64,000 bases of DNA from IMG/VR virus record IMGVR_UViG_3300024308_000302, positions 62,001 through 126,000 of that record; one strand, given 5' to 3'. The position numbers and the translations under genes are program-made. The stretch's first letter is position 1. Each line of letters begins with the position of its first letter. The notes beneath the pieces were generated by a model. It made no database searches, was not told the DNA's origin, and saw only the letters and a program-made list of their open reading frames with translations. Shown one piece after another: positions 1,473 through 62,690 of this stretch.

Positions 1473-2111
1473 TTATTCGTTCATCATAGCTTGCAGAATG
1501 GCAATAGATTTTACTCTTGGTTGTAAAAGCTCTTTAACCGCCCACATTTTTTCAAACAAATTAAACCAAAAAACAGAATCCCAAGATTTCAAAGAGTGAA
1601 GTTCGGTACTATTAAGGCTATGTTCAGTGCAAAGAGCTTTAATAATAGCTTCAATCAATTCACCACAAGCTTTTTTCCAACTGTTATCAATGTTTTCTGG
1701 CATATTGAATAAAAGTGGGTGACTTGCAAGTACAGTAAGTTCTTGAGAAGTAATACTTCGTTGTGAATCAAAATTGCAAGAAGCAAAAACATCAATATTT
1801 GCTTCAATATACTTATATTGCATAAGTTTCATTTCTCGTTCCACAACACGAGATTTATAAAAATCAGGAATAAGTTTTTTAATATCTTTGTCAATAATTA
1901 AAGGTTCTTGAAGATCTTTTGGAATATTCATGACTGCTTTACGAGGATTGGTTTCTTTCAAACCATCAACATGCAATTTACCATCACTGCCCCAATAGGC
2001 AAATGGTTCGCGTAAAAGAAGATGTGATAAAACAGAAAGGCGACTAGGAAAAATAGTAGGACTTTTAAGCATGAGACGCTTAACAATAACATCGGCATGA
2101 GCAAGTTTCAT
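1473..2111 (-). CDS. hypothetical protein
   Basis: 212 aa ORF, followed by terminator GCCGC-TCGAAA-GCGGC at ~1440-1455. Confidence 0.8.
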   Translation of the reverse strand: MKLAHADVIVKRLMLKSPTIFPSRLSVLSHLLLREPFAYWGSDGKLHVDGLKETNPRKAVMNIPKDLQEPLIIDKDIKKLIPDFYKSRVVEREMKLMQYKYIEANIDVFASCNFDSQRSITSQELTVLASHPLLFNMPENIDNSWKKACGELIEAIIKALCTEHSLNSTELHSLKSWDSVFWFNLFEKMWAVKELLQPRVKSIAILQAMMNE

Positions 2112-2725: not shown

Positions 2726-3085
2726 TTAAACAGACATTTTTTTCAACTGTTCAACAAAAGCACTCGATTCAAAACGTTCAATGTCAGCAAAATTATTTTG
2801 CCCACCAGTAAAATCACGACGCCCTTTACAAGTTCTGAACAGAACTTTCAAGCCATCGCTGCCAAAGGATTGTCCAATTTGAATATAAAGTTTTTCACTA
2901 TGAAGAGTAACTTCACCAGAAACAGCAATACCAGCTTTATTGCTACGAATATCATAGGAACCAACAGGAAGATTAAGTTTCGTAGCAAGTTCTTTCAGGG
3001 CTTTTTTACCAGCACGATGAAAAGCGTCCTTGTCTTTTTCGTTATAAGAAAGATCTTTTTTGTTTAACTGTTGAAGAGTAGCCAT
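2726..3085 (-). CDS. hypothetical phage protein
   Basis: 119 aa ORF with RBS and own promoter/terminator. Confidence 0.8.
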   Translation of the reverse strand: MATLQQLNKKDLSYNEKDKDAFHRAGKKALKELATKLNLPVGSYDIRSNKAGIAVSGEVTLHSEKLYIQIGQSFGSDGLKVLFRTCKGRRDFTGGQNNFADIERFESSAFVEQLKKMSV

Positions 3086-50171: not shown

Positions 50172-51301
50172 TTGACATCCACCCCATAGCTAAAGCAAGG
50201 AGATTCCTTCCGCAAGACGGCCATGCCCGACCGCAAGAATGTTAATGGCTGCGTTTACATCTCGTTGATGTATGCCACCGCATACATCACATTTCCATTC
50301 TCTTATTCGCAGCCCATCTAATCCTTTCGGCCCAGTTAAAGACTTACAAAGATGACAGGTGCGGGTTGTGTCTCTTTCGTCAACATTATTATCTAGTAGT
50401 ATGCCTGCGTTATCGCATTTATTTTTCAGCATACTTCTAATCAGGCCAAAGCCTGCATCTAATGTTGACTTTCCTCTTTTTGCTTTGAGCATTTTCTTAA
50501 TGCTCAAATCTCCAACATAAATCTCACTAAAATTTTTGACTAAATTTGTAGTGAATTTATGTAGAGAGTCTTTTCTAATATTAGCAATTTTAGCATGAAT
50601 ATTACGAACTCTTTTTTTATTATTAGCTCTTTGTTGAACTTTTAATTGTTTTTCATATTGTCTATAAACTTGATTATATTTAGTTTCACTTCCATCACTA
50701 GCCGTAGCAGAAGCTTTGAACCCAAGATCAACACCAACAGCCCCTTGACCAGACGACAATACTCTTGGTACTTCAACAACAACATTGAAGTACCAACGAC
50801 CACGAGCATCTTCATTAAAAGAAGCATTTTTAAATTCGTATTTTGACAGTTCATAACTGTCAAATACTGAATAATATTGCTTATTGAAATAAACTTGACC
50901 ATTCACCCAAGAAGCTGCTTTTGAGTTTATTGGAATCCAACCAAGACTTCTTCTTGATCCAAATGTTTTTCGCCATTTGAGTTTTTGTTTTTTAAACTGT
51001 TTTCTTCGAGTAGCATATTCTTTACAAATGGATTGAATGGTTTGACTATGCAAACCAAGTTCTTTAGCAGAACCATTGGTATATTTTTGCAGATCATAAT
51101 TTGAAAGAAACTTTTTATGTTCAACTATGTTTCTATGACTTAATTCATTAAGATAATTCCAAACAAAATTAACGTTCTTAGCCATCTGGCAAAGAACGTT
51201 TTTATGTTTATCTTTAACTCTAACTTTTAGAGTTTTTGTTGTATATTCGGAATTATTCATAGGTGAAATTATAGATTAAAATAAGAAAAAAGTCAATAGT
51301 T
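50172..51301 (-). mobile_element. IS200/IS605-family tnpB-only element
   Basis: Right end GGAATCTCC...GGGGTGGATGTCAA overlapping the tnpB stop; no tnpA; left end uncertain. Confidence 0.75.
50190..51260 (-). CDS. tnpB: RNA-guided endonuclease TnpB (rearranged RuvC type)
   Basis: VDLG, IYVGDL, VDERDTT, CHLC...CDVC Zn finger, RDVNAA. Confidence 0.93.
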   Translation of the reverse strand: MNNSEYTTKTLKVRVKDKHKNVLCQMAKNVNFVWNYLNELSHRNIVEHKKFLSNYDLQKYTNGSAKELGLHSQTIQSICKEYATRRKQFKKQKLKWRKTFGSRRSLGWIPINSKAASWVNGQVYFNKQYYSVFDSYELSKYEFKNASFNEDARGRWYFNVVVEVPRVLSSGQGAVGVDLGFKASATASDGSETKYNQVYRQYEKQLKVQQRANNKKRVRNIHAKIANIRKDSLHKFTTNLVKNFSEIYVGDLSIKKMLKAKRGKSTLDAGFGLIRSMLKNKCDNAGILLDNNVDERDTTRTCHLCKSLTGPKGLDGLRIREWKCDVCGGIHQRDVNAAINILAVGHGRLAEGISLL

Positions 51302-52088: not shown

Positions 52089-52221
52089 AATAAACTCCAA
52101 ATAAATTAGCCTTCAAATTGAATGGATTATAACATAAAAAAGAAAAATTGACAACAAAAAAGCCTACTAGATCACTCTAATAGGCTTCTTTGTAAAGGCT
52201 TTCCACCTTATACGGAAGGTT

Positions 52222-52352: not shown

Positions 52353-52415
52353 AGCACCTTTGTTTCAAGTTCATATAGGCCATCGAGACAGCCATTCACA
52401 AAGGTTAATACAAAT

Positions 52416-52510
52416 TGGCAGGCTGGTCTGGCCTCGAACCAGAAACTTCCACTCACTCGTGGTGTTTTACCAGAGATCCTATGGCGGATCTATTTTAAAC
52501 TACTCAACCT
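52416..52510 (-). ncRNA. 95 nt aberrant tRNA (Trp-like ends)
   Basis: AGG...CCTGCCA; T-arm TCTGG-TTCGAGG-CCAGA; hairpin inserted in D-loop; 6 nt anticodon loop. Confidence 0.6.
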
Positions 52511-52545: not shown

Positions 52546-52651
52546 TGGTGGAAGCGGAAGGATTCGAACCTCCGTGCGGCAAGGTATAGGTTGGTAACAC
52601 CACCCCTCCGCTTAGTTACCTCAGAGTTAAGCCAGACTACTCTACACTTCC
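52546..52651 (-). ncRNA. 106 nt aberrant tRNA with expanded anticodon arm
   Basis: GGAAGTG/CGCTTCC+ACCA, GAGT/ACTC D-arm, GGAGG-TTCGAAT-CCTTC T-arm, ~50 nt between D and T arms. Confidence 0.7.
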
Positions 52652-52667
52652 ATAATTTGTACAGGGC

Positions 52668-52742
52668 TGGTGGTTAAGCTTGGTTTACCTGTGTGACCAA
52701 TTTGAATGGAAGTGTTCCAATTACACTTGCATTCACCACTAC
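52668..52742 (-). ncRNA. degenerate tRNA-sized structured RNA
   Basis: D-arm GTGT-AATTGGA-ACAC, GAATG/CATTC, ACCA end; no T-loop. Confidence 0.4.
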
Positions 52743-52791
52743 TGATCTGGCATAAGCCATTTCTATAAGCAAATATGCATATCTGCTAAAC

Positions 52792-52869
52792 TGGTTGCGG
52801 GAGCAGGATTTGAACCTGCGATCTCCAGCCAATGAAGCTGGTGAGTTAACCGGACTACTCCATCCCGCG
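52792..52869 (-). tRNA. tRNA-Met(CAT), fMet-like acceptor
   Basis: 78 nt cloverleaf with C1:A72 mismatch, anticodon loop TTCATTG, encoded CCA. Confidence 0.88.
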
Positions 52870-52880
52870 TCAAATTTGTT

Positions 52881-52950
52881 CGCAGCACTAAGCCACTTGA
52901 CCTTCGCCCCTAACCTACGCTTGGCCCGGATGAACCTGATGTTCATCTCC
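52881..52950 (-). ncRNA. three-hairpin RNA motif, copy 2
   Basis: GATGAAC/GTTCATC; GGCC-AAGCGT...GGGGCG-AA-GGTC; GTGGC/GCTGC. Confidence 0.5.
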
Positions 52951-53015
52951 CGTATAAAAAAGAGCCGGTTCACCCAACCGTTTTATTTAGACATGTTACT
53001 TATCATCTAAATCTC

Positions 53016-53107
53016 TTGAAAACCTTGTGCCACTGGCACTGACCAACGCCCCGTCCACGCTTGGTCTATTGTAGAGCCTTTATTTCTCTACCCCTTGTTC
53101 GTTTCAA
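53016..53107 (-). ncRNA. three-hairpin RNA motif, copy 1
   Basis: Starts at +1; TTGAAA/TTTCAA closing GTAGAG/CTCTAC, GACCAA/TTGGTC, GTGCC/GGCAC. Confidence 0.55.
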
Positions 53108-53114
53108 TGAGATA

Positions 53115-53143
53115 AGTATAGCAAAATCCAATCTTCATGTCAA
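53115..53143 (-). promoter_or_regulatory. sigma70 promoter of the RNA operon
   Basis: TTGACA-17-TATACT with TG-C extension. Confidence 0.8.
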
Positions 53144-61562: not shown

Positions 61563-62690
61563 CTAACCAAGTTTTTCAATTGTACAAATAACAGGCCGAT
61601 CTGTATACACATTTGAATTATAATTGGTTATTTTATATCTACCCGGAATTACAGGCACAACAACACCACCAAGGTCATCTACAACTTCTTCAAATGACAA
61701 GTTACGTTCGACTGCATATTTTTCAACAAGCTCACTGTTAACAGCTTGAATACACCATGCATCAGTGATCACTTTTCCTTTTGATTTAAATCCTTCATGA
61801 GAAATAGGGAAAATATAGTCCTTTTTAGATCGCCAAGCTTTAGAGTTAACAGCCATAATACTGCCAGTTTTTTTATTGAATGCAATAATAGGAGAAGAGT
61901 TTTGAACTGGAACCATCAATAATCCATGTTTAAGCATAAATTCCTGATGATATAAAGACCCAATAAGAGAATTTGTGTTATTGTAATAACCTGTGCGTTC
62001 TATAATGTAGTTGATAGAATCTGAATGGCCTTGAGGAATCAAATTATTCTGTAGATCATTGGCAAAAACAAGATGATCTGATGTTACATCCATAAAGCTT
62101 TGATGTTCTTCAATGCCATTAGGGTAGTTGCATTTTCTTTGAATTCCTTCACCCCAAATAGAAATTTGTTGAACATCATCAAGTTTATCCCAATGTGGGC
62201 CATCTTTAACCAAAACAGACCCCATAGAAATAACACCATCTTTCATATAGTATGAAGTAGTAGATCCACAAACATGACAATAAGTAGATGGAGCATGAGT
62301 TGGCATAATTGCTTGTTTATAAAAGTAAATTGGAGCATCCATAATTTCATCACGGATTAACTCATAACTTTTTCCCTTTTTAATAGCAATATGAATATCA
62401 CATACCATTGATTTTAAACATGTCATAACATTTTGTTTAATACTTTCTAGAACAAGCTTGGCCATTCTGGATTTATCATTAGCAAGATTCCCCAGAGTGT
62501 AGCCTGAAAAAAGGTTGCTATTGTGCCCACCAAGATCAAGTAGAGTAGAATTGAAAGCATCATTCAATTCGTTTTGAAAAACAGAATGAGTAATAGTATG
62601 TTCAGCCATAGACCAAGAAGTATCGCCAGTGGATGCCGATATGCATTTTTGGTGAATAGCTTTGATTAATTGTTCATAATTAATAATCAT
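61563..62690 (-). CDS. hypothetical protein with CxxC
   Basis: 375 aa; YCHVCG. Confidence 0.85.
   Translation of the reverse strand: MIINYEQLIKAIHQKCISASTGDTSWSMAEHTITHSVFQNELNDAFNSTLLDLGGHNSNLFSGYTLGNLANDKSRMAKLVLESIKQNVMTCLKSMVCDIHIAIKKGKSYELIRDEIMDAPIYFYKQAIMPTHAPSTYCHVCGSTTSYYMKDGVISMGSVLVKDGPHWDKLDDVQQISIWGEGIQRKCNYPNGIEEHQSFMDVTSDHLVFANDLQNNLIPQGHSDSINYIIERTGYYNNTNSLIGSLYHQEFMLKHGLLMVPVQNSSPIIAFNKKTGSIMAVNSKAWRSKKDYIFPISHEGFKSKGKVITDAWCIQAVNSELVEKYAVERNLSFEEVVDDLGGVVVPVIPGRYKITNYNSNVYTDRPVICTIEKLG

Follow-up and report, generated by a model that had tools for sequence, protein, structure and literature searches.

A conserved three-hairpin RNA module associated with tRNA operons in very large phage-like elements

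The genes for tRNAs are numerous in large phages and phage-like elements, and the transcription, protection and maturation of these tRNAs are little understood. HDV-like theta ribozymes and hammerheads occur next to phage tRNAs, and the orphan structured RNAs ROOL and GOLLD are often found beside tRNA clusters in phage-like DNA. The tRNA cluster of T4 includes the species 1 and 2 RNAs (rnaC and rnaD), two structured, co-oriented products of ~120-140 nt that are not tRNAs. A further point of comparison is provided by the put RNAs of HK022, two-stem RNAs of ~70 nt located just after PL or ~270 nt after PR, which work without protein factors (PMC9378689).

The module described here, named D1, was studied in a stretch of 64,000 nucleotides (the window), positions 62,001 to 126,000 of the 290 kb IMG/VR record IMGVR_UViG_3300024308_000302, referred to below as G000. 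On the strength of sequence comparison, D1 is a real, conserved and previously undescribed structured RNA family, a conclusion well supported by covariation. It shares with the T4 RNAs a structured, non-tRNA character and the orientation of the surrounding tRNA genes. These RNAs, however, lack the AGCG..GGGCG hairpin of D1, are not matched by the model R1 built from the two closest D1 orthologues, and are located at the 3' end of their cluster, where rnaC ends in a tRNA-like T-arm, whereas D1 occupies the 5' head or immediately precedes tRNAs. A theta ribozyme is located 3' of the tRNA and folds into a nested double pseudoknot; the place of D1 is 5' of the tRNA, and its helix order is incompatible with that fold. 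ROOL and GOLLD are 500-800 nt long, as against 65-90 nt for D1, or ~200 nt with its second domain, and no Rfam match connects them. As for HK022, putL and putR are short elements of the nascent RNA, promoter-proximal or internal, made of adjacent bulged stem-loops that act in cis, and a genome has several divergent copies of them (PMC9378689); D1, which would likewise act in cis, resembles them in these respects. Compared by description, D1 is compatible with put in its position and overall shape. Put consists of two stems and a minor-groove triplex, and its target is the zinc-binding domain of E. coli beta', whereas D1 has three hairpins and belongs to tRNA units.

The window contains two copies of D1, both on the minus strand (53091-53027 and 52947-52882), in an RNA operon that reads promoter, leader, copy 1, hairpins P5a and P5b, copy 2 and tRNA-Met. 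The sigma-70-type promoter (53115-53143, minus strand as for all features of this operon) is near-consensus, with TTGACA, a 17 nt spacer and TG-TATACT, which gives 11/12 hexamer matches and an extended -10 TG; in homologous operons, D1 lies at the same distance from an equivalent promoter. Between the start site and the first hairpin lies a conserved 5' leader (53092-53105, AAACGAAC..GGGG). Its AAACGAA is common to copy 1, to the orthologue c1' on metagenome contig L161 and to relA and relB, the small-RNA genes of related records, and GG(A/G)G directly precedes the 5' hairpin in all D1 copies.

In copy 1 (c1), the 5' hairpin hp1 (53071-53091) has a 6 bp stem and an A-rich loop, and two compensatory swaps (UA to AU) are observed in its L161 orthologue. 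The central hairpin (53041-53066) is closed by stem H1 (53062-53066 with 53041-53045) and displays in its loop AGCG (53058-53061) and GGGCG (53047-53051), both invariant; a 2 bp inner helix CG/CG with the loop UGGA is tentatively proposed between them. The 3' hairpin hp3 (53027-53039, GUGCC-AGU-GGCAC) is kept in c1' with a loop change. It is followed by the predicted variable hairpin P5a of the second domain (52985-53012), and the small RNAs of the relatives have a variable hairpin at the equivalent position. Copy 2 (c2) repeats the three-hairpin plan with an hp1 of 7 bp and loop AUCAG (52929-52947), a central hairpin (52899-52926; stem 52922-52926 with 52899-52903, AGCG at 52918-52921 and GGGCG at 52905-52909) and an hp3 with two G-U pairs (52882-52896, GUGGC-UUAGU-GCUGC). 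Its central stem includes one G-U pair, and its innermost pair is an A-A mismatch kept in 3/3 loci of the copy-2 type, namely c2, c3 (G000:129.8 kb) and c3' (L161); in the last two, the pairing of hp3 is retained by other letters. The tRNA-Met gene (CAU, CCA encoded; 52792-52869), called by ARAGORN and Rfam, is found 12 nt downstream of copy 2. Further structured RNA and two unusual tRNA-like genes come next, and the operon is probably closed by a strong intrinsic terminator, an 18 bp stem then a U-run, at 52154-52193.

The general architecture of D1, taken here as an independently folding module of ~65-90 nt, is hp1, a central hairpin with stem H1, and a variable hp3. A G-N-Y-A-A-A loop type recurs in hp1, and a single G separates the first two hairpins in relA, relB and contig L159. 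The central hairpin combines a freely varying stem of 5-6 bp with a purine-rich loop of 14-17 nt, whose ends, AGCG on the 5' side and GGGC(G/A) on the 3' side, are invariant even between copies with entirely different stems; between GGGC(G/A) and the closing of H1 stands a single unpaired A or U. Within this loop, most copies can form an inner helix of 2-3 bp capped by a tetraloop, with GGGCG bulging out on the 3' side; this helix is taken as tentative because its register varies among copies.

Since the core loops differ in length, the 12 distinct D1 sequences (from G000, five IMG/VR records and three metagenome contigs, and representing only ~7 lineages) were aligned by hand in blocks, and pairs were counted by script. 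Seven stem sequences were found for H1 (GACCA/UGGUC, AAUCC/GGAUU, GGUGAC/GUCACU, AAUGGU/GCCAUU, GAUAGC/GCUAUC, GACAGC/GCUGUC and GAUGAU/AUCAUC). Pairing is observed in 64/67 H1 cells across the 12 sequences (58 Watson-Crick, 6 G-U), the three exceptions being the one conserved A-A mismatch of the copy-2 type, and each of the six positions displays 3-5 pair types. For hp1, all cells are paired in the 12 sequences (82/82). When the 3' arms were re-dealt among sequences, the mean number of paired cells was 34.2 for H1 and 48.0 for hp1, and the observed values were reached in 0/5000 trials. Single compensatory swaps separate close relatives as well: U-A to C-G in H1 of relA from record G003, another in hp1 of relB from the same record, and others in the P5 and P5b stems. 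The RNA can be assigned to the tRNA strand because the sixteen G-U pairs would read A-C on the opposite one. A flanking helix of 4-6 bp in a fixed register is present in 15/15 family instances, as compared with a helix of at least 4 bp in 2/30 chance pattern matches from an unrelated 3.6 Mb MAG. Folding energy taken alone is weak evidence, with a z of -2.8 in copy 1 and -1.0 in copy 2; the case for D1 rests on comparison.

These results bear directly on a sequence-only reading of the window that preceded this analysis. It had placed two copies of three hairpins each at the head of the RNA operon, at the positions found here on the minus strand, and had seen in their differing yet pairing hairpins a sign of covariation, which the 12 sequences uphold. 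Its count of two has to be raised, as G000 contains four copies. Among the strings it considered as shared, CCAAGCGT and GGTCA include a part of the variable stem (CCA, GGTC(A)), and only AGCG and GGGC(G/A) are invariant. It had further judged the motif to be novel and not tRNA-like: ARAGORN and Rfam call the neighbouring tRNA-Met only, Rfam 15 gives no match at gathering score or at E<=10, and D1 is present in related records and in metagenome contigs. The roles it had suggested, a protein-binding aptamer, a ribozyme or a processing signal, are not told apart by the evidence collected here.

The four copies were detected with the pattern AGCG-N3-13-GGGCG, which has four matches in the 290 kb of G000, all on the minus strand, and none when reversed as a control; two are in the window and two outside it. 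The third copy, c3 (G000:C1:129843-129954, L002 ~1500-1612, minus strand), is 95% identical to copy 2 over 112 nt, P5b hairpin included, and because of this identity the c2/c3 pair at least is, judged from the sequence, a recent duplication. The order in its operon is promoter, tRNA-Pro, a large-insert tRNA, P5b, D1, an odd tRNA and terminator, with c3 ending 6 nt before this unusual tRNA-like gene, which receives no ARAGORN call. The fourth copy, d (~G000:163166-163182), is strongly divergent and belongs to a minimal unit (G000:C1:163041-163260, L164, minus strand) made of a TTGACT/TATTAT promoter, D1, one tRNA and a terminator. ARAGORN assigns to this tRNA a four-base anticodon (tttg), corresponding to an anticodon loop of 8 nt, and it may be frameshift-suppressor-like.

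Beyond G000, five related IMG/VR records (G001-G005) were found through a 384 aa protein neighbouring the operon. The RNA operon is absent beside this protein in the five records, which contain at another site two tandem small-RNA genes each, relA and relB, both with D1. A pattern search for the P5b hairpin retrieved homologues on metagenome contigs L159, L160 and L161, and a MAG contig with P5b alone. D1 is in this way kept in eight other contigs despite diverged flanks. Contigs from four other metagenome runs yielded the locus with variant 5' hairpins in food, retting and freshwater samples, and neither a new core variant nor RNA ends. Altogether, metagenomes from subsurface, freshwater, food, retting and wastewater sources contain the locus, as do some isolate runs, several of which include 96% of it. 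Model R1 proved too sequence-specific: relB scored no more than 15 bits, with its hairpins in poor register, and c2, c3, d, relA and L159 went undetected. Against IMG/VR, a loose motif pattern gave only chance matches in high-GC contigs and a strict one gave no match; a blastn search of the operon against INPHARED phages returned tRNA-Met as sole match.

Every D1 copy is found within a tRNA cluster and on the tRNA strand. D1 comes first after a sigma-70-type promoter in 6/8 distinct contexts, 20-30 nt past TTGACA/TATAAT, and ends 6-15 nt before a tRNA in four of the eight (c2, c3, c3' and d). In 4/5 relatives, relB stands alone: its promoter is followed by D1, the second domain and a terminator, and no tRNA comes before this terminator; past the structured RNA of ~200 nt, the layout continues from this intrinsic terminator to a Shine-Dalgarno sequence and an ORF. 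The second domain follows D1 in the relatives and in copy 1, and consists of a helix enclosing the variable hairpin and P5b, both stems of which covary. The copy-2 type is without it and always adjoins a tRNA.

P5b (52957-52985, minus strand; hairpin 52980-52966; AUUAAAACGGUUGGGUGAACCGGCUC) has the stem CGGUU/AACCG and the loop GGGUG. It is flanked in the window by AUAAAA before and GCUCUUUUUU after, the tail being U-rich and both terminator-like and boxA-like. P5b is 93-97% identical in the relatives, where the stem of relA has changed in a compensatory manner to CGCUU/AAGCG. More conserved in sequence than D1, it is also found in L157, L159-L162 and G001-G005, and occurs alone in some operons. 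The U-run that follows it (U6 after copy 1) is interrupted in c3 and absent in the relatives. The tail reads GGCUCUUUUUUAU in the window and GGCUCUUUAAAAG, also given as GGCUCUUUAA, in L161, and resembles the boxA antitermination signal. The likeness to an rrn-type boxB-boxA leader, namely a hairpin then GCUCUUU(A/U)A-like letters early in a stable-RNA operon, concerns P5b and not D1. In the relatives, unlike in an rrn-type leader, the boxA-like letters constitute the 3' strand of a covarying helix, and the resemblance may be a structural chance.

Other conserved structured modules were observed in these operons. E2, an RNA of ~105 nt, is located between tRNA-Met and the next tRNA-like gene (52662-52765, minus strand); it has an orthologue before a tRNA-Pro in L161, and its closing helix covaries (GUGGU/ACCAC versus GCGAG/CUCGC). 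E3 lies just upstream of tRNAs in the window (52357-52403, minus strand), in L157 (~2935-3000), in L161 (406-480) and in L168 (G000:126.6 kb), and is composed of CUUUGUG, a GGCC hairpin, UAUAUGAAYYUGWAACAAAGG and a second hairpin. Neither E2 nor E3 has an Rfam match, and patterns designed for both retrieved nothing further in IMG/VR. E4, a conserved leader element (GCAAGCGGCUUGAACCGUGGGAAG..CCCUCCUACUUGC), precedes E3 in two operons, L168 (~825-885, G000:126.7 kb) and L161 (345-400). Unusual tRNA-like genes are present at 52546-52651 and 52416-52510 of the window (both minus strand), in L002 (~1690-1880) and in locus L130 of G004. Their acceptor and T arms are proper and CCA is encoded, but their variable arms are very long or insertions of 100-150 nt are present; they are missed by ARAGORN, and one is a weak match of the tmRNA model (E = 0.017).

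D1 was confronted with the RNA classes that its shape or position could evoke. Rfam 15 has no match, whether at the gathering threshold or at E<=10, to D1 in the window or to the homologous small-RNA genes in L157, L159, L160 and L161, and no tRNA is called at 52881-53107 by Rfam (RF00005) or ARAGORN. A tRNA-like cloverleaf was discarded, the loop of the 3' hairpin of copy 1 being of 3 nt and no tRNA model matching. In the HDV-like class, the strand order is P1-P2-P3-P1'-P4-P2', the 3' strand of P1 coming straight after P3, and the cleavage site is at the 5' end, beside the 3' end of a tRNA. The succession between the H1 strands, AG, mini-hairpin and 5-6 nt single strand, is the mirror of HDV; there is no P2 partner, D1 is 5' of the tRNAs and no HDV-type Rfam model matches. 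By sequence inspection, the helix strand order of D1 is also incompatible with pistol and twister. A T-box leader combines a specifier loop with a T-box sequence whose UGGN bulge pairs with the NCCA end of the tRNA, and controls a terminator. UGGN is present in c1, c1' and relB, whereas d, relA, L159 and c2 have GUGU, GCGG or AGGU in its place; no terminator follows D1 in four contexts, and no T-box match was obtained in Rfam. The eight core types were inspected for a kink-turn, in which tandem sheared G-A/A-G pairs between C and NC stems follow a 3 nt bulge, and GA after a 3 nt bulge opposite GA is absent in either strand orientation. Protein coding was rejected as well: the frame that is open through copy 2 as far as the tRNA is interrupted by a stop in copy 1, and differences in core length shift the frame between copies. 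As to an RNase P RNA fragment, the P5b tail shows only a short resemblance to CR-V, with no possible P4 pairing and no Rfam match. The string GGGGCG is too short to be read as a mimic of the 23S P-loop, and the G-tract spacing is wrong for a G-quadruplex.

As for function, D1 is tentatively considered as a leader module that acts in cis, its invariant loop serving as a recognition surface. This explanation is favoured because divergent copies recur within a genome, each tied to a fixed position in its transcription unit, and the stems are free while the loop is fixed. Multiple divergent copies with covarying stems and a fixed loop are usual for riboswitches, T-boxes and nut or put sites, and not for a single trans-acting sRNA. 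We infer transcription of D1, its release by RNase P, a binding partner and an action in cis. The host sigma-70 polymerase would transcribe D1 as part of tRNA precursor transcripts, and the invariant unpaired purines could then offer a docking site to a protein, or to RNA polymerase itself. Once docked, this factor would act on the elongation, protection or processing of the nascent tRNA precursor, and an RNase P cut at the tRNA 5' end would free D1. Some observations run against a cis leader with a specific role. The stand-alone relB better fits a free sRNA or a 5' UTR riboswitch, and the unrelated modules E2, E3 and E4 hold equivalent places before tRNAs, for which reason a generic role as spacer or insulator may apply. 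The organisation of relA and relB lends some weight to a somewhat unlikely alternative, in which D1 would be the functional domain of a stable trans-acting sRNA, for instance a decoy or sponge titrating a host or element-encoded protein through its G-rich loop, and would be merely co-transcribed with the tRNAs and freed by their processing enzymes, like the T4 species 1 and 2 RNAs. Multi-copy sRNAs that titrate proteins are a known type; relA and relB are genes of ~200 nt with their own promoter, and for relB its own terminator, which join D1 to a second, three-way-junction domain with covarying P5 and P5b stems, and copy 1 of the window has the same two-domain layout. Such an sRNA would account poorly for four divergent paralogues at fixed positions relative to promoters and tRNAs, or for a copy-2 type that always abuts a tRNA and is devoid of the second domain. 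D1 could also act as a put-type RNA of the HK022 kind, in processive antitermination or anti-pausing: once folded, the nascent RNA would bind the polymerase that is making it, which would then read through terminator-like hairpins and the many tRNA stems of the operon. A promoter-proximal position in 6/8 contexts, bulged stem-loops that are adjacent (one G apart in relA, relB and L159) and the terminator-like hairpin with U6 after copy 1 are consistent with this proposal. It is nevertheless unlikely, as the unit reduced to promoter, D1, one tRNA and terminator leaves nothing to read through, the U-run after P5b is not conserved and the operons end at ordinary terminators.

The layout of relB, with promoter, RNA of ~200 nt, terminator, Shine-Dalgarno sequence and ORF, also evokes a riboswitch-like leader, in which D1, alone or with the second domain, would sense a ligand or a tRNA and control transcription of the downstream tRNA or ORF. 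Its invariant nucleotides are unpaired, and AAGAG of copy 1 (53013-53017) can pair either with the 5' leader, as in the MFE fold, or with CUCUU after P5b, a possible switch. This alternative pairing is however short and not kept in c1', and no terminator separates D1 from the tRNA in c2, c3, c3' and d; tRNA genes are not known as targets of riboswitches, and the proposal is judged very unlikely. A compact module with invariant unpaired nucleotides abutting tRNAs could in principle be a new self-cleaving ribozyme separating itself from the tRNA precursor, all the more so as small ribozymes are found next to phage tRNAs. New classes are rare, though, and Rfam provides no ribozyme match at E<=10. 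The helix order is unlike that of HDV-like, pistol and twister ribozymes, and the G-rich loop has no visible conserved pyrimidine partner, so that no pseudoknot is evident in D1; self-cleavage is thus highly improbable. Even harder to sustain is a mere repeat at the DNA level, left by a recent duplication or a mobile element and devoid of RNA function. It would suit the 95% identity of c2 and c3 over 112 nt and is scarcely plausible in view of seven stem sequences that keep pairing, G-U pairs that are strand-specific, and conservation in eight other contigs with diverged flanks. A speculative and quite unlikely proposal is that D1 would be the RNA half of a new, dedicated tRNA-making system in very large mobile elements, its loop recruiting polymerase or an element-encoded factor to tRNA precursors, or catalysing their release, and would constitute with P5b, E2, E3 and E4 a so far unrecognised kit of leader RNAs controlling tRNA supply in host takeover.

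Whatever its mode of action, D1 is a covariation-supported family absent from Rfam, present four times in one genome and tied to tRNA units. Its fully conserved purine-rich loop offers a concrete handle on tRNA expression in such elements, and the operons that bear it, with at least four other conserved structured modules, represent a compact source of new RNA families. To date, D1 has been found only in a small clade of metagenomic sequences from very large phage-like elements, and the immediate impact of the finding is moderate.

The nature of the element itself calls for a remark. The description of the operon as a phage operon is provisional, because G000, labelled a "provirus" in IMG/VR, is a section of a metagenome contig of 1.54 Mb (Ga0247725_1000001) and no phage hallmark family was found among ~85 ORFs tested against Pfam or PHROGs, almost all of which are orphans. 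The relatives are in contigs of up to 1.86 Mb, and a tblastn search of INPHARED with the two largest ORFs gave no match. Of the 401 ORFs that reach 100 aa, 313 are on one strand. The few that could be named among the tested ORFs are a leucyl aminopeptidase, a Na/H exchanger, CinA, a dCMP deaminase, a T4-type RNA ligase 1, DEDDh exonucleases and a pilin/shufflon-like protein. There are 35 tRNA genes in G000, many of them duplicates of Leu(UAA), Arg(UCU) and Met; two have the amber-reading CUA anticodon. Stop-codon recoding was considered for G000 and rejected, the counts of long ORFs being no higher with TAG or TGA as sense codons. Two genes of the TnpB/IS605 OrfB type were also observed, one in the window (50190-51260, minus strand) and the other at G000:264692-266389 (minus strand). 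The former is 1.6 kb away from D1 and on the wrong side for D1 to be its omega-RNA. Both combine the Pfam OrfB_IS605 domain with a Cas12f1-like TNB domain, and the second has a long N-terminal extension.
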